NCBI GenBank assembly: GCA_965202585.1
Contig: OZ241826.1
Span: forward strand, 29,388,001 to 29,452,000
Source: Thalia democratica
Lineage: Eukaryota
Length of the DNA: 64,000 bases
Direction: 5' to 3'
Positions within the stretch are counted from its first letter, which is position 1, and every line of letters starts with the position of its first letter. The position numbers and the translations under genes are program-made. The notes below the pieces were generated by a model. That model saw only the letters and a list, made by a program, of their open reading frames with translations, had not been told where the DNA came from and did not search any database. Of the stretch, positions 17,791-57,040 are shown piece by piece.

Positions 17791-18434
17791 AACAAGTTTA
17801 AAATAAAGCACAAAACAAAATCACTAACATATAAAAAAGTCGCTTTTAAAGTTTAACAAGTATTAATTATAATGCATTTATTTCACTGCAGTTTTAAACA
17901 TATTAACCTAGAAAAGCAGCAAAGACTCAAAAAAAATAGCAAAACATTTTTTTTATCAAGGTTAAACGTTCTAAATCTGTTCAAAACATTTCTTCTTTAT
18001 TTTGTTCATAATTCTGTTTTATTTAGAAATGATGAAGTACATGAATACTTTATGTTCAATTTTTTATAAATATGTTTTTAGCGATTTTTAAAATTTTCGA
18101 GAAAATTTACTAAAACGACTGCGGATTATACAAAAGTTTTAACATCACTCAAGGTTTTCTTGAAAGTAGTATTGTACTACTTTCGAATTAAAAAACCAAA
18201 ATTAAGATTATTAAATAGTTTTTTAAGAGTCCTTGCTTGCTTTGTCAAAAATACTTTGTGCCAATGTATTGAAGTTACTTTTGTAAATAAACAATTTTAT
18301 TCATAAATATTTTTTATTACTTCCTTAAAGTTAATAAAGGTTCATTAACTATTGCTACATATATAACAAGGTACATAAATGTTAAATGTTAAATGTTATA
18401 CAGTACATAAATAACAATAAAGTACACAAGTTAC

Positions 18435-20439
18435 CTGAGGTAGTCTGGGTACACTTGCATAAACTATAGGAATGAGAGCGATCAATTGATGATTATAACC
18501 AAAAGAATTCCGCAATTCTCTAAGGTATTTGATAAGAGCAGAATAGTATGCTGATGCTAAATTTAAACTGTTTTGACCAAAATAAATAGTAGGTCTTCTA
18601 GTAGAATGGTTGTGACCAGAAAAGTTAGTACTGAATCCAAAGTTATGGTTTAGATTAATAGAACTAGTTTGTGCTCTAATGTTATAGATCTGAGAAGAAA
18701 AATCACCAGGTCTTCTAGTAGAATTATTCTGAGCCGAGGAGTTAGTAGATGGTGAAAAGTTATTGCTATTGTTTTGACCAGAAGAATTAGTATGTCTTCT
18801 AGTAGAATTGTTTTGACCAGAAGAGTTAGTAGAAGAACTAAGGATTGTGTTTAGATTAATAGCATTAGTAGGTGCTCTAATGTTATCGTTCTGAGCCGAA
18901 TAATCACCAGGTCTTCTAGTAGAATTATTCTGAGCCGAGGAGTTAGTAGATGGTGAAGAGTTATTGCTATTATTTTGACCAGAAGAATTAGTATGTCTAC
19001 AAATAGAATTGTTCTGAGCAGAAGGGTTAGTACCGAATTCAAAGATACTGTTTAGACTAATAGAACTAGTCTGTGCTCTAACTTTATCGATCTAAGCAGA
19101 TAAATAATTCGATCTAGTAGGATTGTTATGAGTGAAAAGATCAAGAGGTCTACTAGTAGAATCGTTTTGAGTGGAAAGATCTAGAGGTTAACTAGCAGAA
19201 ATTTCAATTTGACAATTGAAACCATTATTCGCTGTAGTATTAGCTGTTTGAGCTACTCCAAACGTTTGAGTACTTAAAACAGACTGTACACTAGTAAATT
19301 CTTCAGCATTATTCCTTTCCATCTCATCATTAGACTGTGTCAAGTCGATTGGTTGTTCTTTCTTTTCATTTTCCTTCTGCGTATGGTTAATGATATCATC
19401 GGCTCTTACATTTCCATTGCTGGACGTTCCTTCCTGAAATATTTTGATTTAAGACTTAGTTTGTGGCAAAAGTAATAACTTTCATTAATGAGCTTTATCA
19501 AAACAAGTAGTAATTATAAAGTAAAGAAATTCATCATAACACATTATATTACTTAAATCTAAGATGCTTATTAGTAACACTTAATAGTTGTTGAAAAACT
19601 GATATATCAAAAATATACATATTTTTGTATCAAAAAAACAAAAATTTCATTTCTTTAAGGAAATGTAAAAATTATTTAAAAAGATAAAAAAGGTACAGTT
19701 TGACCTAAGACATAATGTAAAGCAGCTTAATAGACTTAATTTAACAAAACTGCTTCTCAACATTTAAAACTTATGATGTTATTGGTTTTTAAGCTATTGT
19801 ACTTTGTATACTTATTTAGTACTGCAAAATCAACAATTTTCAATTAAAGAAGATAATCCTTTGTAATAACTTTCAAAAAAAAAAAGAAAAAAAAATATTA
19901 AGTGTAAAATGGATTAGGAATAATACAAAATTTACAATCAATTTTTTTATTGCTAGGTTTTTATTTTACTTAACTTAAAAATTACGTATTAAGAATATTT
20001 TTATAAAATATAAGAAATAATAATACTTTATTAAAAACATTACAAACAAGACATTTTACTTACTCTTTGTCAAATATTACATTTAAAATAAATAAGTGTT
20101 GAAATTTATGTACATCAATAAAAATAAAAAAAAACAACATCAGAATTTTAGAGTAATATACAAAAGGGTAAAGTAAAAGGTGCACGAACTCTATATTTGA
20201 ATCTTTAATAGTATAAACTGTTATTGTTAATTAAATTCTTTTTTCTGTGTTGTGTCTACTTTAAACTTTATGAATTGTCTTTTGCTATAATCCAAGCTAA
20301 AAACTGTTTTATTATAATTAAAGTTAATCTGTAAATTGCAAAAAAACAGACAACATACACATTATATATAGAAGAAAATTAAAAACTTTATCTGTACATT
20401 ATTAGACGTAGAAACATTATTTAACACCTTTTTATCCAT
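18435..20439 (-). pseudogene. Paralog alpha-1 of the SIM/repeat/RING family: start exon 20392-20439 and repeat exon 18435-19433; downstream exons not found
   Basis: The 48-nt exon MDKKVLNNVSTSNNVQ has its donor changed to AT. The 999-nt exon is homologous to the beta repeat exon (PIDLTQSN..., ends CAG|gt) and has in-frame stops at 19188-19190 and 19092-19094. Confidence 0.8.
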
Positions 20440-22174: not shown

Positions 22175-22358
22175 GGTTACTATAACATTAAGAGGCAGCG
22201 ATTGTTAAACAAATTTTTAAGTTTTTTGGTTTGTCATTTTACAAAATAATTCTTTTAAGCGGTGGTTTAGATCAAAAATAATATAAAGCAATAAAACTAT
22301 TTCTGTGAAAGATTTAAATTTTTTTGAATAACTGCTGACTCTTAAAGTTATAGTAACC
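22175..22358. mobile_element. MITE of about 190 bp (copy upstream of alpha-1)
   Basis: Termini GGTTACTATAACATTAAGAGGCAGC and TGCTGACTCTTAAAGTTATAGTAACC are inverted repeats. Same family as 33196-33391 and 54128-54317. Confidence 0.7.
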
Positions 22359-23055: not shown

Positions 23056-24268
23056 TTATATATATATATATATATATATACATAAATAAAGTGTTTTCGT
23101 AAGGATAGTTTTTGTATTGAACGAGAATGGCAGCCATAATCTCAATTTATTAGAGAGTCTCATTGTTTTTTTAATTACTTTAAATCAGGGCTTATTAAAA
23201 AGTTTAGAAAAGATTGCTTAATGCTTATTTATTTATTTCTAAATTTAGCTATGTTGTAAAACGTTTATTATTGTTATTTCTAAGCAGTATTTATTTATCT
23301 TGATAATCAAAAAGTAGTTTAAATAACTGGAAATATGTTTTTTTTTAACTTAACAGGTTAATTATATGTATAAAAAATATTAATTTCATCACTTTAAGCC
23401 GTTCGGACATATGAATAACACTTTTTTTTACAAAAAGTAGTCACTGACTACAGCAAACTTAATCGAAGGTAAAAACAAAACTTAAGAAAATAGCTAATAG
23501 TTTTTTCTAACATACTTTTTTAATCAAAGTTTTCTTTTCAATCAAAATAGTTAATATTGTCCACGAAATTGTCATAAATAATAATGTTTTGTTAATTTAA
23601 AGCTCAATACATTACTAAACAAACATATAATTTTTTAATTAATTTTTATTTAAGTTTTAAATCAATGATGTTTTGGTTATTAATGACTGATATTGAGTAA
23701 ATAATGTTAAACTAAATCAAATATACTTAAACGGGTTTTAAGTTTATTTAAAGTATTTAAAGCATTTTATTTTACAGGTTGTTTTAAAAAATACTTTTAT
23801 AAATAGGACAACTTTAAGGCAAAATTTCTACAAACTAGATTTAATTCTTGCCTTTGCAGACGTAGAACAAATTATGTAAAAAACCAACACTATTCAATAC
23901 TTTGTTTAGATATAATACTTTACAATTTATTACTTTAAATAACTATGATACATGAACTGTTTTCTATTAACAAATAAAAATGCTGATTCTTTATTATTTT
24001 TTACTTTCATGTCATAACCTAATATAATAGCAATAACGTACAAAAATGTTACTGTTAAAGTACTTCTAAGATTATGACTTCTATGATCAATATGTAAAAG
24101 TTCTTAAATTGTTGTAAGTTTTCTATTTTGATATAATTAAACGACCCTAAATACTTGACAACTGCCAAATCTACATAAATTTCGCAGACTTTTAAACTTT
24201 GAAAAAGAAACACAATTTTCCAACTGTGCTGGTTTATTACTACAAAAAAAAAACAAAAAACGACCATT

Positions 24269-27200
24269 TTAGTCGCAAACAAACAAGTGTTTGCAGTTGG
24301 GGCACGTGTCGTGATCTTTAAACCACTTGGTGGCGCATTCGGTGCAGAAAACGTGTTTTCCGCTACAATCGAGCTCCATCAGATTGTTGCCCGGTTCGAA
24401 ATCACTCATACATATTGTGCACGTATTGCTCACATTCGACTGGTCTGCGGTGAACTTTCTGAACTTTTCCATTCTCGATTTTGTCAGACCTGTACAGATT
24501 TTTTAGATTTAGAATGTTTTGTAATCGTTTTAATTACTCTGTTAATGGTTAGTAGTTTACTTTACTTGATGTAAAGAAAGAGTTTAAATCGAAAAACTAA
24601 ATGTTTGGTACAAATTAAATCTAAATAAATACTTAGAAAAAACATTCATACTTTTAACTTAGTTAGAAGTCTTTATTTTTTTTAGTAAGCAATACGAAGA
24701 TAACGAAAAATTATTTTTATGTTCTTAACATTTACAAAAAAAAATACAAAAAAAAAGACTTTTGTTAAACAAAACCTTTAGATGGCAGTTCCCATACGTC
24801 ATTGTTGGGATCGAATAATTCATCATCGCTGAAATCATCAAAGAAGTCATCAATGAAGTCATCACCGTCGTCATCACCGACGTTATCACTGACGTCATCA
24901 TCGATATCATCAACAACGTCATTATGATAATGGTTAATGTTAACATTAAGTTGTATGTTAGGAACCTGACCACTACCGGCTTCATCGTAAATGTTAACAT
25001 TCACATCGAATTGCCCACCTTGGCTACTTCGACGAACCACTTGGCTTTGAACGTGACCGGCACTCACTGGAGTCTGATATGGGGCTGCCTGTAATTAAAG
25101 TTTTTAATGAGTTTAAAAAAATTATTAATTAATTACAAAATTATTTAAAATATGTTAGTCCTATTTTTAAACCTTACTGTGTTTTTTTTAGGCACCCAAA
25201 TCAATTTTACCTTTATTTAAACACAAAAATTCATCCAAAATAAAGTCAATACTGTTTATAAGCATCTATTGAGACTAAATAGCTGAATAATTCGTGTAAT
25301 GAAATAAAAAAACATTTACATTACTGTAGTTTTTTACGTTATAAACTAAAAAAACAGTTAAGATAAAATACCAAAAACCGAAACACTTTTTTAGTTAGGT
25401 AAAGCTTCCTTAATTTGTTGAAACCTTCCTTTACTTATTGTTTACATACTTTTATTAAACAAAATCGAAATAGCCTTTTGTTGGTAACCACGCTAGGAGT
25501 CCCTTTTACTTAATATATTTTATAAATAAAAAGTACTTACATATATTTAACAATTACTAACAAGTACTTACACAATTTCAAACTTACATAATTTTGAGCT
25601 TGTTGACCATCGTAGTTTGCGAATGGTGTTTGTAAACTCGGCTGTAAAATTTTAAAATGCATGATGAATATTTTACTTCAATTATAAGCAAAAACTATCG
25701 GTTTGTTTTAATGTCAAAACATAACTCAAGTTATTAAAAATATGATGATAAATTAAGAAAGCATTAAACAAAATTGCTTGGCATTATATAAATTTCCACT
25801 TTTATATTGATATATATTCAATGATAAACTTTTTTTTTACTAAAACCACGATTAGTTTATTAGTCTGATGTTTTAACAGATCCGATACTCTGACGGATCT
25901 GGCCTTGGCTTGACAAAGGTGTAATTGTATTTAAACTTGAAAAACTGATTTAAACCCAGTTCCGACTATAATGATCAAAAAAATTGGTACTAGCCAATTC
26001 TGGTTTGATCAAATTTGTGATAAAAATTCTGATCCAACTTATCATGTTTGAAAACTATCTAAACGAATTATCTTGTTTTGGGTTCAACTACAACAAGCTA
26101 CGACCATTTGAAAAAAAAATTATATCCTGAACGAATCTAATTTTTCTTTAATGTGTAGTTGGATCCGGATTTGGGCAAGCTATTGTTAGATCTATTGCTT
26201 AGATCCGTTATACCACTAATTACAATTTTTTTAATGTAAAAAACTAGTTAATTTAAATTAAACTAACTAAAATTATAAAAATGTAAATGTTATGCCTTTA
26301 CTATAATTTATTCAATTTTTTTTATGGACTTTCTAAATTTTTAATAAAAACTATGGATATTTGAGTATTCCTTTAATTTTAGTTTTTTTTTACTCTTTTA
26401 CGATAGTTTAAACTTTTATGTTCTTAAGTTCATATAAACCTTCCTTAATATCGAAGAGGTTTTTAGAAACTTAGGTATAATAAGTCTACTAAAAAAAAGC
26501 ATTTAATATTTAAAGGTTGAAAAACTGTTTTTCATACTACTTATATACAGAGTTGAAAAAAAAATTTGCCAAATTATTTCCGAGTTTTCATAATTTCCTC
26601 CAGGTTTTTTAGAAGTACACACTTTTGGGTCTATTTTTAGTTTAAAGTTAAGTTAAGGTAAGAAAATGTGTTAAATAGTTCATATAATATTAAAAAGATA
26701 CTCTAAAGCTACTTTAAATGTGTTTTTTTTAAATTTTATAAATATTTAAAATAGATTTTGTGAGTCAAATCGAAATTTACACACTAAACATGTTAAATTT
26801 GTTAAAAATTCCAGGTTTTTCCAGGTTTTTTAGCCTAAATAGTCAAATTTAAGGTTTTATTAAGGTGTTAAGGTTTCTTGGCAGCCTGTATATAAATTAA
26901 AAGTGTGTGTCTCAAAATACAAAAATACTTGACAATATTTATAATAAAATAATATAAATAAATACTCAATAATTATTGATTAACATTTAGCAAATTTGTA
27001 AATTTAAAAAATATATATACTTGAAAAAATACAGCCTATACAAAAGTTTTAACAAAACTATTGTCTCAAAAGTGATATGTATCACTTCCAAGTAAAAATA
27101 AAACGGCATGTAGTCTGTAAGGTGATTTTTTTAGGAGTCCTTGCTCGTGCAACAATAATACTTAGTGCTAATACATTCAGTTACTTTTATAATCAAATGT

Positions 27201-29766
27201 TTTATGTTCATAAATGATTCTTACTTGAAATTTTTGAGTTATCAAAACTTCATAAACTAATGCTACATTTATAATAAAGACTAATATTTAGTTAGTTTTT
27301 AATAAAAATTAACAACTAAATAAGTTACCTGAAATATTCTGGGTTGGTTAGCATAAGCAACAGGGTAAGGTTGAACCAATGGATTATAACCAAAAGAATT
27401 CAAAATGGCCCTAATGAAATTGTCTTGAGCAGAATAGTATGCTAGTGCTGCATTGTGAATATTTTGAGCAAAATAATTTGTAGGAGGTGGAAAGCTATTG
27501 TTTTGAGCATATATATTAGAAGGTGCTCCAATGTTATTGTTTTGAGCATAAATATTAGAAAATGCTCCAATGTTATTGTTTTGAGCATAAATATTAGAAG
27601 ATGCTCCAATGTTATTGTTTTGAGCAGAAATATTAGAAGATGCTCCAATGTTATTGTTTTGAGCATAAATATTAGAAGATGCTCCAATGTTATTGTTTTG
27701 AGCATAAATATTAGAAGATGCTCCAATGTTATTGTTTTGAGCATAAATATTAGAAGATGCTCCAATGTTATTGTTTTGAGCATAAATATTAGAAGATGCT
27801 CCAATGTTATTGTTTTGAGCATATATATTAGAAGATGATCCAATGTTATTGTTTTGAGCATAAGAATTAGAAGATGCTCCAATGTTATTGTTTTGAACAT
27901 AAGAATTAGAATGCGCTCCAATGTTATTGTTTTGAACATAAGAATTAGAATGTGCTCCGATGTTATTGTTTTGAACATAAGAATTAGAATGTGCTCCAAT
28001 GTTATTGTTTTGAACATAAGAATTAGAAGGTGCTCCAGTGTTATTGTTTAGAGCAGAAGAATAAGAAGGTGCTCCAATGTTATTGTTTTGAGCAGAAGAA
28101 TAAGAAGGTGCTCCTGTGTTATTGTTTTGAGCAGAAGAGCTAATAGGTGCAGCAAAATTATTATTTTGGGCAAAATAGTTAGAAGCTCCCATGTAACTGT
28201 TTTGACCAAAAGAGTAACTAGGTGCTCCTGTGTTACTGTTTTGAGCAGAAGAGTAAGCAGGTGCTCCTGTGTTATTGTTTTGAACATAAGAATCAGCAGG
28301 TCTTCTAGTAGGGTTGTTATGAGTAGAAAGATCAAAAGGTGTACTAGAAAAAATTTCATTTTGACGAGTAAAATTATTATTCGCTGTAGTATTAGTTGTT
28401 GGAGAAGCTCCAGAAGTTTGAACACTTGAAACAGAAATTGAACTAGGAAAACCTTCAGCATTGAACTTATCACTCTCACCATTAGACTGTGTCAAGTCGA
28501 TTGTTTCTTCTTCTTTTTGCTTTTTGTTCTGGGTCAGGTCAATGATCTCACCAGCTCTCTTGTTTCCACTTCTGGACGTTCCCTCCTTGAGTAAAATTAT
28601 TCAAAACTTGTTAATTTTTGTTTAATTCAGCTTAAAATTTACTGCAAATATTGTCATAACTTATATAGTTAGTTATACTAAGTAAACTTTTTTTTATATT
28701 TTTTTTACTGATAAGTAAAATAGGAAAAAGTCTTTACTATGCATAAATATTCTTTATATTATTTGTTTCTAAATTATTAATAAAAAGTTCGGCGTGATAT
28801 GTTCTTAGTGTCATAAGGGGTGCGGAACAAGATTAACTAAAATGTTGTCTTTTTTATGCTAACCTGTGCTAAAATATACATAATGATAAAACTTTTTAGA
28901 AATTAAAAATAATTTAGTTTAAAGCAGCTTATGTTGTCTTTTGGCACACTATAATGAATTACCACTTGTGTATGAAAATAAGTTTTATATTATACATAAT
29001 TTAAACAGTAAATTGTATTTAATTATGCTAGTGTTCTGACATTTTTGCTATTTTTCTTTAATACTTATTATTAATATTCAACAGTTGCTTTAAAATTAAT
29101 TTATTAATACATGTTTTTTTTTAAATACCAAATGTTGGACTTTATTTTACAGAGGCAAAGATGACTTTCAGATCAGAAAAAAGCTACAACTCGAGCTAAC
29201 ACTTAATTTAATAAATCTGCTTCATAATATTTAAAAAACACTTATAAAGTTTTTGAGTTAGTGTGTTTGTATATATTATTGTACAATATTGCAGTATCAA
29301 TATATTTTATAGACTTGAAGATAATAACATTTTAGAATACTTTTTTATTAGTAAAAAACCAAACAAAGGTTTAAGGTACAAAGTGTAAAATAAAGCACGG
29401 AAAACTTAAAAGGAAACATAACCTTTAAGTTACTAAAACAGTTTATATTTTTTCAAAATAAGTTACTAACTTATTTTTAATGCTTGGTTTTAGTTTTTCT
29501 TTAAATTTACTTAAAAAATTACCTTTTAACAAAGTTAAAGAACCATAAAAAAAATGTAATACGTTAAAACAATACAAAAAGACTATTCAATAAACTTTTT
29601 GTCAATAATATTACATTTAAAAAAGGAAGTGTTAAAATTTATTTGCACCAACAAAAATACAAAAAATAACAACAAAAAGTTAGATAAATATACAAAAGGA
29701 AAAAAAAGTAAACATTACCTGAACATTGTTAGACAAAGAAAAATTATCAGAAATTTTTTCATCCAT
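24269..29766 (-). CDS. Beta-1: intact SIM-SIM / Asn-rich repeat / acidic / RING E3 ubiquitin ligase (STUbL-like), about 612 aa. Exons 29719-29766, 27329-28585, 24776-25088, 24269-24489
   Basis: Exon lengths 48+1257+313+221 nt join in frame across GT-AG introns: MDEKISDNFSLSNNVQ|EGTSRSGNKRAGEIIDLTQ..ETIDLTQ..IFQ|AAPYQ..WELPSK G|LTKSRMEKF..CTIC..CSGKHVFCTEC..W..CPNC. Boundaries are conserved in the beta-2 copy. Exon joining is inferred without RNA data. Confidence 0.82.
25860..26218. mobile_element. Old GGATCC-rich MITE remnant in a beta-1 intron (orthologous copy at about 48810-49132)
   Basis: Multiple GATCCG/CGGATC words, ending GATCCGTTATACCACTA. Similar words occur at 21490-21720, 30588-30645 and 33758-33835. 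Confidence 0.4.
27500..28290 (-). repeat. Coding 39-bp minisatellite (13-aa unit AQNNNIGASSNIY) in beta-1
   Basis: Plus-strand unit GCTCCAATGTTATTGTTTTGAGCATAAATATTAGAAGAT. There are 13 consecutive near-perfect units plus several degenerate ones. Confidence 0.97.
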
Positions 29767-35802: not shown

Positions 35803-35850
35803 CTGCACATTATTAGACGCAGAAATATTATTTAAAACCTTTTTGTCCAT
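35803..35850 (-). pseudogene. Orphan start exon of paralog alpha-2 (MDKKVLNNISASNNVQ); its own repeat exon is absent
   Basis: Intact acceptor TTGCAG, ATG at 35850 and donor CAG|GTAATG. Homology to the alpha-1 intron stops at about 34927, just short of the repeat-exon acceptor. Confidence 0.75.
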
Positions 35851-39029: not shown

Positions 39030-39064
39030 GAGGTAGGGAGGAGAGGGGAGAGCCACCTCTTACT
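38999..39064 (+). promoter_or_regulatory. -1 programmed ribosomal frameshift signal: A_AAA_AAC plus a predicted H-type pseudoknot
   Basis: The heptamer at 38999-39005 is in gag phase. The pol frame opens right after TAA 38993-38995. Stem 1 is CTCCTCCC (39014-21) with GGGAGGAG (39036-43); stem 2 is AGTAAGAGGT (39025-34) with ACCTCTTACT (39055-64), interleaved. Confidence 0.88.
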
Positions 39065-43800: not shown

Positions 43801-43913
43801 TTTTTACGACATGCAGCGATAATTGTTGCTATTGTTAACGACCTTAACGACTTAACGACTTAATGACTTTAACGGTTTTTACGACGTGTAGCAATAATTG
43901 TTGCTATTGTTAA
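43801..43913. repeat. Internal repeat cluster: two 38-bp direct repeats flanking about five TTAACGAC-like octamers
   Basis: TTTTTACGAC(A/G)TG(C/T)AGC(G/A)ATAATTGTTGCTATTGTTAA at 43801 and 43876. Confidence 0.85.
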
Positions 43914-44353
43914 AAAATATCATACCTCGTTAAGAAAACTGAAAGCTAATTATTGTTGTAACTGTTAAAAAGATAAAACTGAAGTTATTTCAAAAACAAT
44001 AAGGCTACATTTTAATTTTTTAAAAAACAAAACTGTATCGGTCAGTTGAAGCATTCTTCAGTTATTGTTTAACATCAGTGCTTACTTCATTTTTTTTTTA
44101 CGTTAACGATAAAAAGTAATAACATTATAAATACTATGTTTAGTTAATAAACTAGCCGATTTTATTAAACTATTAATACTTATGCTATATTTAATGCTTT
44201 TTGTTTGCATATGATTAAATAAACATGAAAAATGGATTATTACGTCATATCAACACTCCCACGTTTCTCTCAACATGGAAAATTTTCTTCTTCTCACCGC
44301 TTAGTATATAACGTAGAATTTTCAGTTACTCCATTTATTTGTTCATCGATATC

Positions 44354-46063
44354 ATGATAAGAGTAGCACTATTGTTGTTCATGTTAACAATGTCAGTGAA
44401 AGCTGAAACATCTTCACGACGACATATACTTCCAATGTGCACAACCGAGATTATTCGTAATTATAAATTGGATATGCCAGGACGATGTACTCCAAAAAAA
44501 AATGTTACGAGAATTGAGGGTATCACAATCTACAAACCGCATAAAGTCACGGTTGAAATTCCAGCCATTGCATGTAGGAAAGAAACCATCATTAACGAGT
44601 GTACTTATTATTTTTTTGGATCACAAGTTTGTGCTGAGACAAAACGAATATTTTCCGTTGTGGATACTAAATCATGTAAGCTGGCAGCAAAGACCAGATA
44701 TACTACGGAGGGAAGTCTTGTTCCTTCCAACGACAAAACCCTTGTCACCAATAATCAATTGAAACCAAGGTATCAATATCTTACTACGCTTACAATCGCT
44801 ACGACTAATTTTCGATTGGCTTCATTGTCGGTAACGAAAAACATTGTAACTGAGAAAATTTCTCACCTTATTATGGGTGAATTAAGTTGTGAAGGAAAAG
44901 CATGTACAGCAGAATCGTGGAGAATTGTCTTGCTTTCAAACAAAACGCTGTCGTGTGACTCAATAACGAGTTTGAGAAACAAAACCTTGATAATTCATCC
45001 CGTTTCTAACGGCCATCTCTTTGAAATTGAAGGGTCCAATATCATCGCAAATAAATTGATTAGCTGTGACAAGAAAGCTACTCAATGTATTAAGCTTGAG
45101 CAGAATGAAAGGTCACTCTGCACTTTTTCTGGACATGTTTTGATTATCCAGAAGAACACTAATATTTCTACTAGCAAACTTGAAGAAAATGAAACAGCAG
45201 CGACAGCAAAACAACTGGGTGCTGCAGTCTCAGGAGTTGCCCATGGTAGCCTGTTAAACATCAATTTACTGAAGAATTTTTTCGAGATGGCTTTATGTGA
45301 AAACGCTCGATCTATCCTGATTTCACTGAGAGGATCTCAAAGGCTAAATCCTTCGGAAGTCCTTTCCCTGTTGTTAGAGCGTGAGGTGCAAGCAGTGTAT
45401 TCTGCTGGGAGCTTGTGCCAACTTAAATGCTCCATGGTTGAAGCATATCTCCAACCAACGTTGATGGTTAACGGCAGAGAGTCTGATCGCCCGTTGTTCA
45501 GGACTTACACTGGGCTTGGTACGACACTGTCATCATTACGTCAAAATAGGTATCTCTCAACAAAAATAACATTTAGCGCCTCTAGATCAAATAGCAGAAT
45601 GTTTGAGTTCAAGGACAAAATTTTGCTGTTCAATAATTCTGTGTTGACTGAAACCAAACCATCAGTAAAAAAGTTATCGTTGAAAAGCTTAAAAATTAAG
45701 GAACAACTTTTTACTATAGATGATCAAGAGTTACTGAGAGATTTCCAACAATTGTCATCGTCTCAGGAAGAAGACACTAAACAACAAATTAGAAATTTAA
45801 TCTATCTGGAAAAACGCAGATATGCTGCAGAGGGACTTGACATTACTGGTTTCCTATCAAACACAGATGATACACAGTCAAATGTTTTTGCAGATATCAT
45901 TGACGCTTTCAAGAGTACCATATGGAGTAAAACGGAAGATGCACTTGATACGCTATCCAGAATATACACGATCATAGGATCAGTATTGTTGATTGTTTTC
46001 ATCGTACAAGTCATAAAACAATATATCAGAACAATTCGGAGTACTGAGAAGAATGCTGCGTAA
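44354..46063 (+). CDS. env: Env: gB-like class III fusion glycoprotein (about 569 aa from ATG 44354)
   Basis: Signal peptide MIRVALLLFMLTMSVKA and Cys-rich ectodomain. ALCE...QRLNPSEVLS...REVQAVYSAG...C and SDRPLF resemble recalled herpes gB motifs (WCELQ..KLNP..RVSARMLGD..C; YSRPL). C-terminal TM IYTIIGSVLLIVFIVQVI. Confidence 0.85.
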   Translation: MIRVALLLFMLTMSVKAETSSRRHILPMCTTEIIRNYKLDMPGRCTPKKNVTRIEGITIYKPHKVTVEIPAIACRKETIINECTYYFFGSQVCAETKRIFSVVDTKSCKLAAKTRYTTEGSLVPSNDKTLVTNNQLKPRYQYLTTLTIATTNFRLASLSVTKNIVTEKISHLIMGELSCEGKACTAESWRIVLLSNKTLSCDSITSLRNKTLIIHPVSNGHLFEIEGSNIIANKLISCDKKATQCIKLEQNERSLCTFSGHVLIIQKNTNISTSKLEENETAATAKQLGAAVSGVAHGSLLNINLLKNFFEMALCENARSILISLRGSQRLNPSEVLSLLLEREVQAVYSAGSLCQLKCSMVEAYLQPTLMVNGRESDRPLFRTYTGLGTTLSSLRQNRYLSTKITFSASRSNSRMFEFKDKILLFNNSVLTETKPSVKKLSLKSLKIKEQLFTIDDQELLRDFQQLSSSQEEDTKQQIRNLIYLEKRRYAAEGLDITGFLSNTDDTQSNVFADIIDAFKSTIWSKTEDALDTLSRIYTIIGSVLLIVFIVQVIKQYIRTIRSTEKNAA

Positions 46064-46209
46064 ACCTTATTGACTATTTGGAACGAACAATTTGAACTTA
46101 TAGGTTTGTAACAATACTAGGGTTGTATACTTTTAAATTTTTAACTACATTATTTACAAACTTGTATGTTACTTTATTTTATATTTTAACTTGTGTTTTT
46201 TTAATTATT

Positions 46210-46244
<35 letters not shown>

Positions 46245-46715
46245 TTAAAAATAGAAAAATAAAATAAAAATTATATAAATAACTATAATTACATAAAAAA
46301 AAAGGTTTTTTACAAAAAAAAAAAAATAAGAAATAAAAATTTATTTTTTGTGTGTTGTTTTAATATTAGTGTTAAGTGTTACTTTTTACATAAAAAAAAA
46401 AAAAAAAAACACAAAAGTATCGTTGCATGTTACAATATCTATTTTACATTTGATAGTATGTTTCCTAATAGAAGGATAAATTGAGCCAATGTGACTCCTT
46501 TGTATTTTACTTTTTATGTTTTGTCGCTTAAAATTTTTTGTACATACAATTTTTTAGCTTATATTACAAGTAAAAACTACATCAACGTTATTTTTAAGCT
46601 TTATGCTATGTGTATTAAACTTGTTTAGTATTGCACGTAATCGAATTTCGTGGTATAAGTGATAATAACATCCTTAAAATTTCCATACTCTCATTTAATT
46701 CAAAAAAAATTGACT

Positions 46716-46733
46716 GGAGTGGGGGAAGGGGAG
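46716..46733 (+). promoter_or_regulatory. Candidate polypurine tract GGAGTGGGGGAAGGGGAG (67 nt upstream of the 3' LTR)
   Basis: Strongest purine run before the 3' LTR. The LTR-adjacent sequence is only AGACGGAG. Confidence 0.45.
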
Positions 46734-46800
46734 CGCTCGGAAAATGCGTTATTAAAATCCCTAAGCCTCCACAGTCATTTCTTCTTCGGGCTAGACGGAG

Positions 46801-47292
46801 TGTAGCAGTCTAACAGACATGCTCTGTTATAAATTGAGAGAATTGGGAAAAAGGGGTTGTTAAAGCACTATATATGCTACGCATGAACGATCACGTCGCT
46901 TTTTATCGCATGCGCTTCTTGATCGCATAGACGAGTATACAAAAGTCAGTGTTTTACTTTTTGCTAGTTTAGTATTATATTATATTTGTGTTATTTACTT
47001 ACGATTATAGAGTGTATTTGGTGTTTTATATTTTATGTTGTGAGTTCTTTTAATAAATAATTGTGTTTAAACGTTTTTGTTGTTTTAACTTAGATTACTT
47101 GACCATTCATTCGCGGTATATTAATCAATAAATAGCGCGACATGAATTCGAAACAAGTTGCCAAAAAGTTGTCCAAAATGATTACTCGCTCTGAGTCAGC
47201 CAACGCGCCTGAACCCGTTGTTAGCGAAACAGAGAAGTCACGACCGCCGGCTCCGTTAAGGGAAAGTACCGAAGGACCGAGCGATCGTCACA
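46801..47292 (+). repeat. 3' LTR (492 bp)
   Basis: Identical by eye to 37108-37599 and followed by the TSD GCCC. ORF 47142-47357 is the LTR-encoded gag start running into host DNA. Confidence 0.97.
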
Positions 47293-50200
47293 GCCCGGTT
47301 CGAAATCACTCAAACATATTGTGCACGTATCGCTTACGTTTGACTGGTCGGCCGTGAATTTCCTGAACTTTTCTACTCTCGACTTTGTCAGACCTTTACA
47401 GATATTTTAGTTTAAAAAATTTTTGGGTACGTTTTAATTACTCTATTAAGGGTTGGTAGTTTACGATTTTTTGGTGAAAAAAAAAGTTTTAATACAAAAT
47501 CTAAATAATTGGCACATATTAAATCTATGTAAATACTTGGAAGAAAAACTCATTTTTTAAACTAAGTTAGAAGTCTTTAATTTTTTTAGTAAGCAATACG
47601 AAGATAACAAAAAAATATTTTTTTGTTCTTTACATTTACAGAAAAAAATTACAAAAAAAGAGAGTCCTTTGTAAAACAAAACCTTTAGATGGCAGTTCCC
47701 ATACGTCATCGTTGGGATCGAATACTTCATCATCGCTGAAATCATCAAATAAGTTATAAAAGTCATCAAAGAAGTCATCACTGACGTCACTACTGTTGTC
47801 ATCAACAACGTCATTACTGACGTCATTACTAACGTCATCGTCATCACGGACATCATTACTGACGTCATTATGATAATGTTTAAAGTTAATAGTAAGTTGT
47901 ACGTTAGGGTTCTGACTATCACTGACGTTATCGTAAGTGTTAATATTGACATCAAGTTGCCCATCCGGGCTTCTTAGACGAGCCACTTGGCTTCGAACGT
48001 GACCGGCACTCACTGGAGTTTGATGTGGTGCCACCTGTATTCAATTTTTTGATGGGTTTAAAAAAATTGTTAATTTACAACGAAATGATTTAAAATGTGT
48101 AGGTCTTGTTTTTAAATCTTACTGTGTTTATTTATTTTTTAGGCACCCAATTTAACGTTTATCTTTATTTAAGCACAAAAACTTCTCTAAAATAAAGTCA
48201 ATACTGTTTATAAGCATCTATTGAGACTAAATAGCTGAAAAATGTGTGTAATTAAACAAAAAAACGATTATGTTACTGTAGTTTTAAACGTTTTAAACTA
48301 AAAAAACAGCTAAGATTAAAATACCAAAAACCGAAACACTTTTTTAGTTAATTAAAGCTTCCTTAATTTGTTCAAAACTTCCTTTATTTATTGTTTACAT
48401 ACTTCTATCAAACAAAACCGAAATAGCCTTTTATTGGAATCCACGCTGGGAGTCCCTTTTACTTAATATATTTCATAAAAAAAAGTAGTTACATGTATTT
48501 AACAATTACTAACAAGTACTTACACAATTTCAAACTTACATAATTTTGAGCTTGTTGTCCATTGTAGTTTGCAATTGGTGGTTGTAAACCCGGCTAGAAA
48601 AATTAATATGCATGATAAAAATTTTACTTCGATCAAAAACAAAATTATCGGATTGTTTAAACATCATACATAACTTAAGTTATTTAAGTATGATAATAAA
48701 TTAAGAAAACAAAAATAAAATTGTCTGGCATTATAAAAATTTCCATTACTATGTTACAGCTTATATTGTATGATAAACTTTTTTTACTAAAACCACGATT
48801 AGTTTATCAATGTGGTTTTTTACCAGATCCGAAACTCTGACGGATTTGGCCTTGGCTTGACAAAGATGCAATTGTATTTAAACTCATAAAACTGATTTCA
48901 ACCCGGTTCCGATCATATTGAATCTTAGTTTCCGGATCCAATCAATCATGTTAAAAAAACCTTTCTTATCATTAATTTGTTCTATAGGTCCAACAAAAAC
49001 TAGCTACAACCATTTAAAAAAAAAAAGCAAACCCTGACGTGAACCTTTTTTTTTTTTTGTTAATAATATCTAGTTAGATCCGAATTTCAGCAAGCTACGG
49101 TCAGATCTAGCGTTTAGGTCCGTTAGTACACTAATAAAAACTACTTTAATGTTATAAACTTGTTAAATCAAGTTTAACTAATTTAGTAAATAAAAATGTA
49201 GAAGTTATACCTTAACTATAATCTGTTTTAAATTTTTTTTAGAGTTAATGATTTTTTAGCAGAAGCTTGTATACTTGAAAGTAAATAAATAAAAGCAAAC
49301 CTTTAATTTTAGTCAGTTTTTTACTTTTATAAGTTAAGTTTAAACTTTTATATTTTTTAAGTTTATATAAACTTTCCTAAAAATCATCAAAGAGGTTTTT
49401 AAAAAATTTTGTATAATAAGTCTACTGAAATAAATTAACAAAGCATTTAGTATTAAAAGGCTTTAAAATGTTTTTAAAACAACTTATATACATAGTTGAC
49501 ATGTGTTTTCGCCAAATTTTTTCTAGGTTTTCAAAATTTCGTTCAGGTTTTTAAAAGTACACACATTTTCAGGTATATTAATTAGTTTAAAGTTAAGTTT
49601 AAGATAAAAAACTGTGTTTAATAGTTTTTAAATATTGCAAAGATACTCTGGGTACTTTAAATGTCTTTTTTAATAAATTTTTCGAATCCATTTAGTTGTT
49701 TTTTTAAATCAAATCGAAATTTAATTGTTAAAAATTCTAGGTTTTTCAAGATTTTTTAGCCGAAATTGTTAAATTTAATGCTTATTTAAGGATTCAAGAG
49801 TTTTTTGGCTAACCGGTATATAAGTTTAAAGTGTGTTTTTGTATCTCAAAATACAAAAATATATGATTTCATTTTAGCGAATTTAGGAAATTTTAGAAAA
49901 CTTACTAAAAAAATTGCGACCTATACAAAAGTTTTAACAAAACTTATGTCTCAAAAGTGGTATTGTACTACTTCCGAATAAAAATAAAACGACATGTAGG
50001 ATGTAAAGTGATATTTTTAGGAGTCCTTGCTCGTGCAACAAAAATACTTAGTGCTAATACATTCAATTACTTTTATAAATATATGTTTTATGTTCATAAA
50101 TGTTTCTCACTTGAAACTTTTGAGTTATCAAAACTATTAAAAACTAATGCTACATATATAATAAGGATTAGTATTTAGACAGTTTTTAATAAAAATTAAC

Positions 50201-50361
50201 AAATATATAAGTTACCTGAAATATTCTGGGTTGGCTAGTATAAGCAACAGGGTAAGGTTGAACCAATGGATTATAACCAAAAGAATTCAAAAGTGCGCAA
50301 ATGAAATTGTCTTGAGCAGAATAGTATGCTAGTACTGCATTGTGAACATCTTGAGCAAAAT

Positions 50362-51020
50362 AATTTGTAGGTGCTCCAATGTTATTGTTTTGAGCATAAA
50401 TATTAGAAGGTGCTCCAATGTTACTGTTTTGAGCATAAATATTAGAATGTGCTCCAATGTTATTGTTTTGAGCATAAATATTAGAAGATGCTCCAATGTT
50501 ATTGTTTTGAGCGTAAATATTAGAAGATGCTCCAATGTTATTGTTTTGAGCATAAATATTAGAAGATGCTCCAATGTTATTGTTTTGAGCATAAATATTA
50601 GAAGATGCTTCAGTGTTATTGTTTTGAGCATAAATATTAGAAGATGCTCCAATGTTATTGTTTTGAGCATAAATATTAGAAGATGCTCCAATGTTATTGT
50701 TTCGAGCATAAATATTAGAAGATGCTCCAATGTTATTGTTTTGAGCATAAATATTAGAAGATGCTCCAATGTTATTGTTTTGAGCATAAATATTAGAAGA
50801 TGCTCCAATGTTATTGTTTTGAGCATAAATATTAGAAGATGCTCCAATGTTATTGTTTTGAGCAGAAGAATAAGAAAGTGCAGCGAAATTATTATTTTGG
50901 GCAGAAGAACTAAATGGTGCTGCAAAATTATTATTTTGGGCAGAATAGTTAGAAGTTCCCACGTTACTGAATTGACTCAAAGAGTGAGTAGGTGCTCCTA
51001 TGTTATTATTTTGAACAGAA
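50362..51020 (-). repeat. Coding 39-bp minisatellite in beta-2
   Basis: About 13 near-perfect AQNNNIGASSNIY units plus degenerate ones. The exon is 156 nt (4 x 39) shorter than in beta-1. Confidence 0.96.
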
Positions 51021-54000
51021 AAATCAGCATGTCTTCTAGTAAAGTTGTTATGAGTAGAAAGATCAAAAGGTGTACTAGAATAAATATCATTTTGACGAGT
51101 GAAATTATTATTCGCTGTAGTATTCGTTGTTGGGGATGCTCCAGAAGTTTGAACCCTTGGAACAAAAATTGAACTAGGAAAACCTTCAGCATTGAACCTA
51201 TCACTCTCACCATTAGACTGTGTCAAGTCGATTATTTCTTCTTCTTTTTGCTTTTTGTTCTGGGTCAGGTCAATGATCTCACCAGCTCTCTTGTTTCCAT
51301 TTCTGGACGTTCCCTCCTGGAAAAAATATTAAAAACTTGTTAATTTTTTTTTAATTCAGATTAAAATTAACTGCAAAATTTGCCATAACTTATACAGTTA
51401 GTTATATTAAATAACCTTTTTAATGTTAAGTAAAATAGGAAAAAGTTTTTAGTATGCTTAAATATTCTTTATATTATTTGTTTCTAAATTATTAATCAAA
51501 ATCACGGCGTGATATTTTCCTAGTGTCATAAGGGGTGCAGAACAATATTAACTTAAATTTGTCTTTTTTATGCTAGCCTGAGCTAAAATTTAATGATAAA
51601 ACTGTTTAGGAATTAATAATACTCTAGTCTAAAGCAGTTTATGTTGCCTATTGTCACATCAGAATGTATTACTATTTGTGTATAAAAACATTTATATTAT
51701 ACATAATTTAAACAATAAAACAATGTATTTTATTATGCTAGTGTTTTAACATTTGTATTATTTTTTTTTGATACTTATTATTAATGTTCAAAAGTTGTTT
51801 AAAAGTTAATTTTTTAATACATATTTTCTTTTAAAAATACCAGATGTTGGATTTTATTTTAGAGAGGCAAAGATGACTTTTAGATAAGATAAAAGCTACA
51901 TTTTGAGCTAAGACTTAATTTAAAAAAAACTGTTTCATAATATTTAAAACACACTAATAAGGTTTTTGAATTAATGTATTTATACGTATTATTGTACAGT
52001 ATTACAGTATCAATATATTTTATAGACTTGAAGATAATAACATTTTACAATACTATTTATTAGTAAAAAACCAAACAAAGGTTTAATGTACAAAGTGTAA
52101 AATAAAGCACGGAAAACTGAAAAAGAAACTAAGTTACTAAAACAGTTTATATTTTTTTAAAGTAAGTTACTTAATCATTTCTTAATACTAGGTTTTAGTT
52201 TTACTTTAACTTTACTAAAAAAAATTTCTTTTTAGAAAGTTAAAAAACCATAAAAAAATTAAAAAATATGTCATTCATTAAAATAATACAAAAAGACTAT
52301 TCAATTGACTTTTTGTCAGTAATGTTACATTTAAAACAAGTTAGTGTTGAAATTTATTTGCACCAATAAAAATAGAAAAATAACATCAAAAAGTTAGAGA
52401 AATATACAAAAAGAAAAAAGGTAAACATTACCTGAACATTGTTAGACAAAGAAAAATTATCAGAAATTTTTTCATCCATTTTAGCTTATAAATCTGTAAA
52501 AAAACGAGACAAATTATTAAACAAGCTATGTTATAATTATAAACTAAGAAATGTTTAATTTAATAGTAAAAAAAAACTTATTTAAACTGCAAAGATGATT
52601 TGCATTGTTATTTGAATATTTAGCAGAGATGAACCTAAGCTTTTTCAGGGGGGGCTAGTACAGACTTTACTTAAAATATTAAACTACACTTGATACAGCT
52701 AAAAAACAAGTTATAAAGTTAATTTGTACATGTTTAACTAAATATATTTTTGCTGTTTTTATTTACAGTAATATAAACATTACTAACTCTTAAAAGAATA
52801 AAGATACCCACAAATTATTATTGTTTTAAGTCAAGATCTTTAAAATACTAATAAAAATTTAGATATAAAACACTTTTAAATCCTATTTGTTCAGTTAATA
52901 AAAAATGATCAGCTAGTTATATCTATAATACTCAATATAAATTACTCTATTAATATTTATTTTTAATTGATTTTACTTTTCGAAATATTTAGTTAATAAA
53001 TAAATTTTATCTTTATATTTTAATTTTGTTTAACAATAATAAATCTGTCAGGGACAAAATGTGATGGTTTTACCCCTAATAATTCTAAAGTATCTTTAAT
53101 ATACTATTGGATCATTACATAGCATTCTATTTTAGTATTATGCTAAGATTTAAATAAATGTTCAAATTTTCCTATTTAAAATGGTCACAGTTAAAAAGTT
53201 AAATAACCATTATTAGTTTTTTGTTAGATTTTCTATTTTAAACTAATTTTTTCAAAACCCATTTATAATAATACTATATCATACAAATATTTTGTTGAAA
53301 AACACAATGTTTTTGTCTAAATCTTATATTTGAACACATTATAAAAGTACGTTAAAAGATCTACCCATACATAATCTCAGATTTATTTTTAGATTTTTTT
53401 TTATTAATATGAAACACCTGATTTTTGCAGGTTTTTAAATAAATGTTTTTAATTCAAGGTTTCAAGGTTGTTTTGCAAGCCTGTATAAAAAAAACAGTAT
53501 GTTTAGCATATATCTAAAATATGATTACCTTTTTAGATTTTAAAAACTGTTCTAAAATACTGAAAACTATACTTTGTAACCTAAACTAGCTAAGTTATCA
53601 GGATTTTTAAAACCATAAATAATTTTCCTCGTTCTACATACTAATAACCTATTTTTGTTTTAAAAAAATATGTCAAATATGATATTCATTAAAAAGATGT
53701 TAAAATAAGTTGTCAAAGTATAAAAAGAAATATCTACAGGGATATAAAAAAATTAATTAACTTCTAGAATTAAGTCTTTAAATAAAGTTAGTTATATCAA
53801 ACAAAATAAAAGATTACAAACTATTGTTACTTGTTAGTTTTTTCTTATTTAATGTCTAAAAATAAAGTTAAGAAACTTTAAAAAAATCTTAAAACTACCC
53901 TGAATTAAATAAAAAACTTAGTTAGCATTACTTTTTCTAATTCTTTTAACTAAACATTAGTTTCTGAAGCTATCTAAAATATTTAACAAACTAAAATAAC

Positions 54001-54127
54001 ATCAACAGTTATTCTCAGTTAATTGAGTTAGTATACTGAGTTTGTGGCTGCCATTCTTTTTTAATATTAAAATTATCCTCGAGAAAGCACATAAAGTGAA
54101 CATACAGAACAAAAAGTTAGAAATTAC

Positions 54128-54317
54128 TAGGATACAATTACTTTAAGAGACAACAGTTGTTTAAAAAAAATTTTAAACTTTTCTCAGAAATATTCTATAC
54201 TATTATGAACTATTTTTATCCACACCAGGGCTAAGAAGAAGTTTATTTTGTAAAATCTAAAATTTAAAACTAAAAAAAATTGTTGATTATTTCCTGTCTC
54301 TTAAAGTTATAGTAACC
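54128..54317. mobile_element. MITE of about 190 bp (ortholog of 33196-33391)
   Basis: TAGGATACAATTACTTTAAGAGACAACA ... TGTCTCTTAAAGTTATAGTAACC. Confidence 0.65.
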
Positions 54318-57040
54318 AAATATTAAATAAGCTGTGTTTGCAAAGTTTTTACAACGTTTAATTTATCTAAATGGGAAAAAGATTGTTAAAATAAAACTAT
54401 GAAAAATTTTTAAAAATTGAAATTTACTAAATTTTAAGTACTTGTTTTATATTAGAAAAAATTAACAATTTGAGTTTGATAATTTAACTAAACTGTTGAA
54501 TTAGTAAATGTAATCTGCAAGAAACTTTAAATTAAAATATTTACTATTTTTACTCTAATGGATGTATGTACCTGTATGATAATAACAAATGATTGAACTT
54601 ACTAAACTTTGATCAGTCTTTTTCGCTTGGCTAGTTTTATATGTACATTTTTATAAAATATTCAGTATTCAAAACACGTTAGACTAAATATACAAACCTA
54701 AAAGTAGCTGTTTGTGGAAAACAATTAGTTTAAGCTACATTGCCCCTTTATATGAAAACCTGATTTCTTAGTGAAGCTTTTTAAGAATCAATTATATCAG
54801 TTAACTTCTATACTAAAAAGCACGCATGAATCTACATAAATAAAACATTCTTTTTAAATTCTTTGCTAGAGTAAATAAATTAAAAATTTCCGCACATAGA
54901 ATTATTTTTTACAGATTTACTAGTTCAATTTATGATAGTAGCCTAGAAATTAATGTCTTTAAATAAATTAAATTTTATATAACAGTTGCAGCATTATAAT
55001 TTAGCTTGTTATACTCAATTTATAATTAAAATACTTATGCAGGGCTTCTTTTCAACAGTTGAGTCTAACTAAAACGAATGTTTCAAAAACAAAATATTTA
55101 TACAATTTAAAGCTGGTTACAGTTGTTTTTAATTTTTATTAAACTATTTTTTGTTCTTTGTATAACTTAATGTTAGGATTATAGAAATCAGTTGGTAAAT
55201 TCACCGTTTGAAATTTTTAAAAATTCAGAAAAAGCAAAACATATATGAAAAGAAGTATAGTTTTTAACTTAATAGTTTTTTTAGTTAAATAACCAATTTT
55301 TTTTTCCCCATTTAGGGGTAGCACATGCCAACTAAAACAATCAAAGAGTTGCTTGTAAGTAAAAAATATATATTTAGATTGTTCTGGCAAGTAGTAATTG
55401 ACATTTTAGTGATAAGAACATAAAACTAAACCTAAATAGTTTTGTAAACCGTTTTTATTTAAACATGGATTTTGATGTTTTTTTTCTAATCCAAGTAATA
55501 AAGTTTTCGTGCAAGATTTTAAATAAAGCGGGCTGATGTTTTATTATTCTATACTTCTAACAACCCTGCTGTCAACTTATTTTGTGTAAAACTTATACTT
55601 TTTTATAAATTCAAACTAATTTACCATTAAACATAGCTATCGTTGTAACGGTTGAACCTTAAATCCAATAAATAGTCCAATTAATATAATTTTATACTTA
55701 TTCAAATTTCTTTATTATTATAACTAGCATTTAGACATATTTTTTTTTAAACTTTGATCAAAAATTGAACTTTTTATGTATAAAATAAGACAATATACAT
55801 TTTGATATTTATTTTATTAGTTGAAAATATTTAAATCTGTTCTTAAATAAAATTTTTAAAGTTTAACTTGAAATATGTTTTGATATTGTTTAATAGTCTT
55901 TAAAAGGGGGTTGTCTTAACTTTTTTAACATGGGGTAGTATATTGTTTTGTTCAATAACAAAAAGTTTTCTGTAACAGTTTTTTTAAAACAGTCTAAGTA
56001 AAAAAACTGTGGTCAACTCTATCATTATGTTTTAGTTTTATTACTTGAATTTCTTCTTTCAGCAAAATATTTTTTTAAGTGTTCAACTATTTTAACTAAT
56101 ACAGATATTGTGGTATATCTTTTTATGAGGGTTTTAAAAATATTTATCAAAAACAGAAAAATTAATTTAAACTATAGTAAATGTTAGTAGATTAACTGTT
56201 GGTCATTAAAAGCTCTTTTATATTACTACAATTTGCTGCATTGAAAAAAAAAAAACCACTCACTGAGACGTGCACCACTTGGAAACAATTTAACGTTATG
56301 TCCAGGACATATAATACAACTTAAAAATCAATATTTAACAATTGTTTTACTTTAACTTTCTGTTGTATAACGAAAAAATTAAAAATAAGCAAATAATTTT
56401 TTTTCATGAGGATGATTTTTATACTTATTTAAAATCTGATTAAACTTTCGTTTCTTTATGTTTTTACATTCAGCAAACAAAACTTTGTCAAAGACCTTAA
56501 GTTTATTTTATGAATAAATCATTTATTTAACATGATTGAAAAAAAAGAATACAATTTAAATTTTAAAGTTTGCTCGTAATAAATACTATCACTTTTTTTT
56601 GCTGCTTCTTTTTTTTCGTAAGAACAAGTAATTTCAGTAAGTTTAAGCACTTTTGAACTTTTTTTTTATTGAGGGTAATAACCTACATATGTTTTAAAAC
56701 TTCTATTGGTTTCAATAATGCTGCATTCATTGCTTTAATACAATTATCACTAACCAAGTTTACTCAGTATTAAAGAATATGGGTGAAAATAGTGCATAAG
56801 TTACTGAACAATTGTTAAGTAACCAGGTATCGTTTTTTGTTTAAGTAAGACTATAGATTTTGTTTGAAATACCTAACTTGAAACAAATAATTTAGTAGTT
56901 TCAAGTGTAATTTTTTTTTAATGTCCTGGACAAAACGTTAAAAGAATTCCAATTTGATAACCGAAAAGTTTTACTTCTTTTAAATTAATAAATTTTATGA
57001 TATCTTTCAGCTATATAGTCAAGTGCAGTCTTAATTACTA

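Follow-up and report, generated by a model that had tools for sequence, protein, structure and literature searches.

A decaying tandem cluster in Thalia democratica with an intact, lineage-restricted gene predicted to encode a RING E3 of STUbL-like layout

Arkadia (RNF111) is an established SUMO-targeted ubiquitin ligase (STUbL), with clustered N-terminal SUMO-interacting motifs (SIMs; VVVI, VEIV and VVDL) and a distant C-terminal RING (PMC3678163). In RNF4, SIM2 and SIM3 lie in TVGDEIVDLTCESLEPVVVDLTHND (EIVDLT...VVVDLT) with a linker of 8 residues, and acidic linker residues between the SIMs are critical (PMC4083429). The core of a SIM needs at least three V, I or L in four residues, flanked by acidic or phosphorylatable residues (PMC12751080). 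In RLIM (RNF12) and RNF6, a long disordered region precedes the RING, which is C-terminal. To our knowledge, RLIM has not been described as SIM-dependent. Here we describe a tandem gene cluster of Thalia democratica, found in a stretch of 64,000 nucleotides (contig OZ241826.1 of assembly GCA_965202585.1, positions 29,388,001 to 29,452,000; hereafter the window), which has a GC content of about 25%, zero N and a eukaryotic gene structure. One of the four copies in the cluster, copy B, is intact, and its sequence points to a real, lineage-restricted RING ubiquitin ligase (E3) with a STUbL-like layout that would be nearer to Arkadia than to RNF4.

Copy B is encoded on the minus strand by four exons (Table 1). 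The first-pass annotation of this DNA had claimed that a repeat, an acidic and a RING open reading frame (ORF), which a program had listed separately, belong to one protein of about 612 aa, and this was borne out: the junctions 29719/28585, 27329/25088 and 24776/24489 are exact GT..AG junctions in an in-frame coding sequence (CDS) of 1839 nt including the stop (612 codons). The 48-nt start exon that it had placed in front was found as well, with an ATG and 16 codons (MDEKISDNFSLSNNVQ) before a GT donor, and the residues EIIDLTQ...ETIDLTQ, said to lie upstream of the listed ORF, sit at the beginning of exon 2, which opens with EGTSRSGNKRAGEIIDLTQNKKQKEEETIDLTQSNG ahead of the TTG ORF of the program-made list. 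The sequence KGLTK straddles the exon 3/4 junction, where the Gly codon is split in phase 1. In copy B, an acceptor-like AG (ttttacag) precedes the ATG by 16 nt, and each of the five exon-1 copies has ttttacag or tttttgcag directly before its ATG, so that a non-coding exon further upstream or a trans-splice site may exist. The start exon and its upstream region are doubled by a direct tandem duplication of 1.6 kb (29604-31283 = 31215-32894, 98.75% identity). A perfect 17-bp hairpin is present at 31102-31066, within the span 29604-32894. A bacterial promoter scan of the window gave no enrichment and is irrelevant for this eukaryotic gene, and an Rfam search of the whole window gave no match.

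The copies were inventoried by self-comparison of the window and by tblastn with the model protein. Copy B spans approximately 23584-34922. In copy C (36330-37107 and 47293-55828) the four exons are open and the splice sites and phases are conserved, with the RING exon split directly after ...SDFEPG by a retroelement; without the retroelement and one target-site duplicate, copy C reads as an uninterrupted 572-aa protein. The long terminal repeats (LTRs) of the retroelement match over 493 bp with 100% identity, start with TG and end with CA. As they are identical, the insertion must be very recent, and copy C may have been a working paralogue until then. Copy A (18076-21207) is a pseudogene in which these searches detected neither exon 3 nor exon 4. 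Copy D, a 5' fragment of the A type, is like copy A probably a dead remnant. The first-pass annotation had described one intact and three damaged copies in birth-and-death, and the inventory agrees with it, adding a duplicate of exon 1 at 31377-31330. This arrangement is consistent with a duplication, long ago, of the stretch between approximately 19502 and 34922, which would have yielded D and C, and, later than this, the small tandem duplication and the very recent retroelement insertion. The region is best explained as a tandem cluster that arose by segmental duplication of one lineage-restricted four-exon gene and is decaying. Inverted repeat fragments are also found inside the cluster (21218-22376 versus 33180-33629 and 54128-54645) and are probably transposon remnants.

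Comparison of copies B and C revealed where the coding sequence is constrained. Introns of the two copies are 80-88% identical. Exon 1 is 100% identical, with no changes, between flanks of 87-88%; the N-terminal part of exon 2 is 94% identical (flanks 88%) with a ratio of nonsynonymous to synonymous rates (dN/dS) of 0.83, from few changes at a dS of 0.06; the C-terminal part of exon 2 is 91% identical (intron 2, 83%) with a dN/dS of 1.85, from 15 changes in 57 codons; and the RING-encoding exon 4 is 90% identical (flanks 81-82%) with a dN/dS of 0.27. Exons 1, 2 and 4 are thus more conserved than their flanks and under coding constraint. Exon 3 (83% identity, flanks 81-83%, dN/dS 0.75) is conserved no better than the introns, yet it is open in both copies and differs by in-frame indels only. 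Over the non-repeat parts the dN/dS is 0.68. The 5' half (27329-30500 versus 50216-53210) shows a dS of 0.06 and an intron identity of 88%, as opposed to a dS of 0.23-0.27 and an intron identity of 81-83% in the 3' half; this greater similarity in the 5' half points to gene conversion or to a mosaic history of duplication. It could be argued that the whole cluster, including copy B, is a decaying and non-functional gene family, as three of its four copies are damaged, the linchpin Arg of the RING is gone in both B and C, the overall dN/dS is 0.68 and exon 3 is conserved no better than the introns. We consider this very unlikely, since frames of 612 and 572 codons have been kept free of stops and frameshifts at an intron divergence of 12-19% and a GC content of about 25%, the indels of exon 3 are all multiples of three, the dN/dS of the RING is low and the break in copy C is so recent.

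The middle of the copy B protein is dominated by the 13-aa repeats of exon 2, which number 20.7 in copy B and approximately 15.7 in copy C. The repeat region contains 28% Asn, 17% Ser and 8% Tyr, a prion-like composition, and a role for it in condensates is speculation. Residues 57-538 of copy B (window positions 24776-28417) form a lysine desert of 482 residues with no Lys at all, while the other 130 residues hold 14; the desert has 7 Arg instead, despite the AT-rich genome. For its 219 non-repeat residues the probability is about 7e-7 at the Lys frequency of the RING family described below, and the corresponding 443 residues of copy C hold a single Lys. Lysine deserts of a comparable kind are reported for Slx5, a subunit of a yeast STUbL, and for the E3 San1.

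The desert is unbroken across exons 2 and 3, which fits a single polypeptide and bears on the question whether the repeat and RING exons are always joined in one protein. Exon 2 (1257 nt) is symmetric (phase 0-0), and exon 1 to exon 3 splicing therefore keeps the frame: exon 2 could be a cassette, the main product being a protein of 193 aa with only the acidic tract and the RING, or else the repeat and RING exons could lie on separate transcripts. The RING relatives, of 90-230 aa and encoded by a single exon in the two found on long contigs, would be in line with this, and so would the fact that, with its donor unused, exon 2 runs into a stop 9 codons later. Nevertheless, we regard such an arrangement as improbable. 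Without a Met, exon 3 cannot serve as the first coding exon, and exon 4 has a Met in copy B where copy C has Val; no start codon is thus conserved in exons 3 and 4, and a coding exon must precede them. Furthermore, copy C duplicates all four exons, which are all still open, and both copies retain the donor of exon 2 and the acceptor of exon 3.

The RING exon of copy B matched Pfam zf-RING_2 (1.1e-12). In a sequence search of the PDB it scored 40 bits with RLIM, where the pre-RING LTK... segment aligned as well, 34 with RNF38, 33 with RNF165 and 23-26 with RNF4; the profile of its family gave, in bits per domain, 51.7 for Ark2C (RNF165), 47.5 for RLIM, 46.8 for Arkadia, 43.4 for RNF38 and 35-37 for RNF4. 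An AlphaFold2 model of the exon, built as a single chain from an alignment of 60 sequences, reached a mean confidence (pLDDT) of 92 and predicts a helix (3-6) and a strand (10-13) ahead of the RING. With Foldseek, the best match of this model was RNF12/RLIM (6w9a_B; TM score 0.87-0.90, root-mean-square deviation 1.2, 70 residues), followed by RNF13, RMR1, RNF38 and Ark2C. The sequence, profile and fold scores together place the RING in the RLIM/Arkadia class: judged from sequence and model it is a domain of this class turned C3HC4, and its family placement is settled. Membership of the RNF4 family was rejected, as RNF4 reached 23-37 bits versus 40-52 for RLIM and Ark2C and ranked 35th with Foldseek (TM 0.59).

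All eight zinc ligands are present in the RING of copy B together with the conserved Ile, Trp and Pro, which we take to be E2-contact residues, and C23, C26, C41, H45, C48, W55, C62 and P63, which are invariant in the family, are all found. The predicted RING thus has what an E3 domain needs, with the caveat that the linchpin is Lys and not Arg. Copy B also has the pre-RING extension of the RLIM, RNF6, RNF38 and Arkadia type, as the RLIM alignment starts at residue 1 and the model superposes on RNF12, and, as in RLIM and RNF6, its RING is C-terminal to a long disordered region. It deviates from these RING-H2 proteins, Arkadia and Ark2C included, in its C3HC4 instead of C3H2C3 pattern, ligand 5 being Cys; from RLIM and RNF6 it differs by two extra residues between ligands 3 and 4 (x3 instead of x1) and by the linchpin Lys (Gln in copy C). 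No similarity to RLIM, RNF6, Arkadia or Ark2C was detected outside the RING. With RNF4, copy B has the HVFC signature and the C3HC4 pattern in common, whereas its RLIM-like pre-RING segment is unaligned to RNF4 and its protein is three times as long.

An exhaustive HMMER search of 1.84 billion representatives returned 159 matches at <=1e-10, and about 140 of the matches listed belong to one family of proteins of 90-230 aa with a C-terminal RING. The RING exon matched about 140 family representatives from end to end with 40-58% identity, and when aligned to 59 members (41-56% identity) it had every invariant column. The family signature, LTxxRIxKFxxFxAD followed by C-x2-C-x14-C-x3-H-x2-C-x2-C-x10-C-x2-C, is present in copy B, and we therefore count it as a member. 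The ligand spacing (14, 3, 10) is common to copy B and 128 of 149 members, and 140 of 149 have Cys as ligand 5; most members have a tail of 5 residues past the last Cys, copy B one of 7. All 26 family clusters for which the source was checked came from ENA or JGI metagenome assemblies, each contig with a retrieved sample was from a marine metagenome (many from Tara Oceans), including those of the closest RING relatives (56-59%), and the relatives' contigs that were checked have 24-34% GC, near that of the window.

Outside the RING the family differs from copy B. The inspected members have helical or coiled-coil-looking N termini without a SIM-like motif and have kept the linchpin Arg. Two members on Tara Oceans contigs (L092, 10.3 kb, and L093, 8.4 kb; gene-poor, 25-27% GC) are single-exon genes for proteins of 212-215 aa with a helix-rich, coiled-coil-looking N terminus. 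In a few members the RING is preceded, as in copy B, by an acidic tract free of Lys, and the distant relatives P0006 and P0015 combine an acidic tract and a RING within one ORF. On the contigs of the nearest relatives, no upstream acidic or SIM exon was found within 1.7 kb. A degenerate-pattern search of metagenome contigs for RING relatives yielded only distant RING proteins (27-48% identity) and no close relative, and exact look-ups in public assemblies gave no record of either the RING-exon ORF or the gag of the retroelement. The first-pass annotation had likened the pre-RING helix (KGLTK) to that of RLIM and RNF6, which agrees with the RLIM alignment over exon residues 1-68 and the Foldseek result. 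The search with hidden Markov models that it had asked for placed the RING exon within a large family of short RING proteins. Its view of the gene as a lineage-specific assembly was likewise upheld, as [VI][VI]DLT is absent from all 164 RING relatives examined and searches for homologues of the N-terminal part returned none. In one Tara sample, SAMEA2732583, a contig with a RING relative that is among the nearest (L090) occurs together with the contig of the nearest relative of the retroelement pol (L006); a relative of the source organism probably lives in the marine plankton.

The disordered N terminus of copy B contains two [T/I]IDLT motifs at a distance of 9 residues. When all 64 kb were translated in six frames, [VI][VI]DLT was observed three times versus 0.43 in shuffles, once in exon 2 of copy B and twice in exon 2 of copy C. 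Within one gene the motifs are encoded differently (ATT GAC CTG ACC versus ATC GAC TTG ACA), which argues against a recent internal duplication. Between B and C, residues 25-52 show no synonymous and one nonsynonymous change, and in pseudogene A motif a has decayed to DIINHT. As candidate SIMs, copy B has one strict core (IIDL) and TIDL, which has two of four hydrophobic positions and follows EEE, while copy C has two IIDL cores. The tandem arrangement with a short linker resembles the [IV][IV]DLT motifs of RNF4, and the motif sequence is similar to the Arkadia SIM VVDL as well. The overall layout, with N-terminal motifs far from a C-terminal RING, is that of Arkadia; Arkadia has three SIMs and copy B two motifs, one of them strict, through which it may bind SUMO. 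A reading as a PxDLS CtBP motif was rejected, the Pro being present in pseudogene A alone. A PDB sequence search with the SIM region gave no match, and a word-based search for homologues of the complete exon 2, swamped by low-complexity candidates, gave none either.

Several observations weigh against a copy B protein that acts as a STUbL. It has only one strict SIM core in 612 residues, SIMs are loose motifs (PMC12751080), and the linker between its motifs holds three Lys, where RNF4 needs acidic residues. None of the 164 relatives examined carries [VI][VI]DLT, and a homologue search with the non-repetitive N-terminal 105 residues of exon 2 gave 38 candidates, none significant. At the linchpin, the position that follows the last Cys, B has Lys and C has Gln where at least 90% of the family have Arg, so that ligase activity may be weakened. 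The dN/dS is 0.75-0.83 in exon 3 and the N-terminal part of exon 2 and 1.85 in the short C-terminal part of exon 2, and an isoform that skips exon 2, without the motifs, would also be in frame. In metagenome contigs the spliced exon 3/exon 4 junction was unmatched, which is uninformative as the organism may be outside that collection. Copy B may therefore be a genuine RING E3 that is not SUMO-targeted, in which the IDLT motifs serve some other beta-strand or peptide contact, or none, and the N terminus is a weakly constrained, lineage-specific appendage. The single strict core, the looseness of SIMs, the absence of the motif from the relatives, the dN/dS near 0.8 of the N-terminal part of exon 2 and the change in repeat number, as predicted from replication slippage in an AT-rich genome, would all suit this view. 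We consider it rather unlikely, because the motif regions of B and C are one residue apart at introns that differ by 12-17%, the motif is of the RNF4 SIM2/3 type with an acidic run ahead of its second copy, and its decay is confined to the pseudogene.

The observed architecture is correct and non-random, and as it stands the locus offers a well-supported gene prediction together with a functional hypothesis at the level of motifs. SUMO-targeted activity of the copy B protein is a plausible guess made from short motifs. Taken as a whole, the account that we favour, of an intact copy B encoding a 612-aa RING ligase, of its motifs as SIMs in an Arkadia-like STUbL, of a copy C recently lost and of dead copies A and D, falls somewhat short of an even chance. 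Under this account the 16-residue start exon would be followed by the disordered N terminus with the motifs, about 20 repeats, the Asp-rich tract and the C-terminal RING. The RING would recruit E2~ubiquitin, and the IIDLT motifs would bind SUMO as beta-strand SIMs, so that SUMO-modified partners become ubiquitylated in an Arkadia-like and not RNF4-like manner; the lysine desert may guard the long disordered spacer against self-ubiquitylation. A more far-reaching proposal seems doubtful to us: an undescribed class of STUbL in which tandem SIMs, a prion-like repeat and a lysine-desert spacer were added to an unannotated RING family in an AT-rich marine animal lineage, with the repeat driving SUMO-dependent condensates and with fast turnover through duplication, gene conversion and retroelement hits.

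Table 1. Features of the gene cluster and of the retroelement in copy C (positions in the window)
Feature	Position	Strand	Description
Copy B exon 1	29719..29766	-	ATG, 16 codons, GT donor
Copy B exon 1, second identical copy	31330..31377	-	product of the 1.6-kb tandem duplication
Copy B exon 2	27329..28585	-	419 codons, phase 0-0; SIM-like motifs, Asn/Ser/Tyr-rich 13-aa repeats, unique C-terminal part
SIM-like motif a	28532..28546	-	IIDLT, residues 30-34; sole strict psi-psi-x-psi core in copy B
SIM-like motif b	28490..28504	-	TIDLT (B) / IIDLT (C); EEE before motif; codons differ from motif a
Tandem repeat array	27496..28301	-	39-nt (13-aa, QNNNIGASSNIYA-type) repeat, 20.7 copies
Copy B exon 3	24776..25088	-	Lys-free Asp-rich/hydrophobic acidic tract ending VWELPSK-G; no Met
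Copy B exon 4	24269..24489	-	pre-RING LTKSRMEKF and RING C-x2-C-x14-C-x3-H-x2-C-x2-C-x10-C-x2-C, including stop
Polyadenylation-type signal	24233..24238	-	AATAAA, ~30 nt past the copy B stop; kept in copy C
Copy C exon 1	52432..52479	-	100% identity to copy B exon 1
Copy C exon 2	50216..51316	-	open; two IIDLT motifs; 13.2 + 2.5 copies of the 39-nt repeat
Copy C exon 3	47683..48034	-	open, acidic; indels versus B all in frame
Copy C exon 4, 5' half	47293..47393	-	GLTKSRVEKF...SDFEPG; truncated by retroelement
Copy C exon 4, 3' half	36984..37107	-	NNLIELNCGGKHVFC...VCD and stop; includes second GCCC target-site duplication copy
Copy A exon-2-like pseudo-exon	18429..19433	-	two in-frame stops; motif a DIINHT, motif b PIDLT; 201-nt repeat
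Copy A exon-1-like	20392..20439	-	MDKKVLNNVSTSNNVQ; donor GT lost (AT)
Copy D, A-type 5' fragment	34929..36319	-	84% identical to 19502-20928; exon-1-like sequence only, 35850-35803
Ty3/gypsy-type LTR retroelement in copy C RING exon	37108..47292	+	LTRs 37108-37600 and 46801-47293; ~10.2 kb
Retroelement gag-like ORF	37449-39029	+	526 aa
Retroelement pol	39080-42730	+	1216 aa
Retroelement env-like ORF3	44339-46063	+	574 aa

The retroelement in copy C is flanked at both ends by a 4-bp target-site duplication (GCCC); copy B, where this site is undisrupted, has TTGCCCGG there. TGGCG was found immediately past the 5' LTR. Its Pfam domains are ordered PR, RVT_1, RT_RNaseH, Integrase_H2C2 and rve, which identifies it as a Ty3/gypsy element, and the closest relative of its pol (86%) was found on a Tara Oceans contig. 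ORF3 gave no sequence match in Pfam or the PDB; its signal peptide, many Cys, N-glycosylation sequons and C-terminal transmembrane segment suggest that it is env-like. The element thus appears to be an intact endogenous retrovirus-like element. In copy C it is a mutation and provides no evidence of a function for the gene, and nothing found bears on a role of the ligases in transposon or virus defence or in germline SUMO turnover, as the first-pass annotation had thought possible.

Elsewhere in the window, two exons of a protein kinase were found on the plus strand (2929-3495 and 4919-5152), the first ORF ending in a Gly-rich loop and the second giving a weak match to the C-lobe of Pkinase (E 7.5e-4). 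The ORF with the Gly-rich loop recalls, in our judgement, PIM kinases. A fragment of a hAT-family C-terminal dimerisation domain (9753-10109, plus strand; Pfam E 4e-5) is probably what remains of a transposase, or else a hAT that has been domesticated. Two adjacent ORFs at 61361-62058 (plus strand) match the N- and C-terminal parts of Reeler (E 1.7e-3 and 9.6e-10) and are probably exons of one gene. A near-palindrome of 147 bp (57041-57187, 83% self-complementary) and a dispersed direct repeat near the window start (5-560 versus 1621-2157, 73% identity) are both probably transposon remnants.

Whatever copy B does, a large family of RING proteins has come to light here, which comprises over 140 clusters at 50% identity. 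If the SIM-like motifs bind SUMO, copy B would represent another independent origin of STUbLs beside RNF4/Slx5-8, Arkadia, TOPORS and the viral ICP0, and one built on a RING of the RLIM/Arkadia class, with a prion-like repeat and a lysine desert of unusual length. It would then be a natural test case for how E3s shield disordered targeting arms from self-ubiquitylation, and for how fast such ligases are born and lost.

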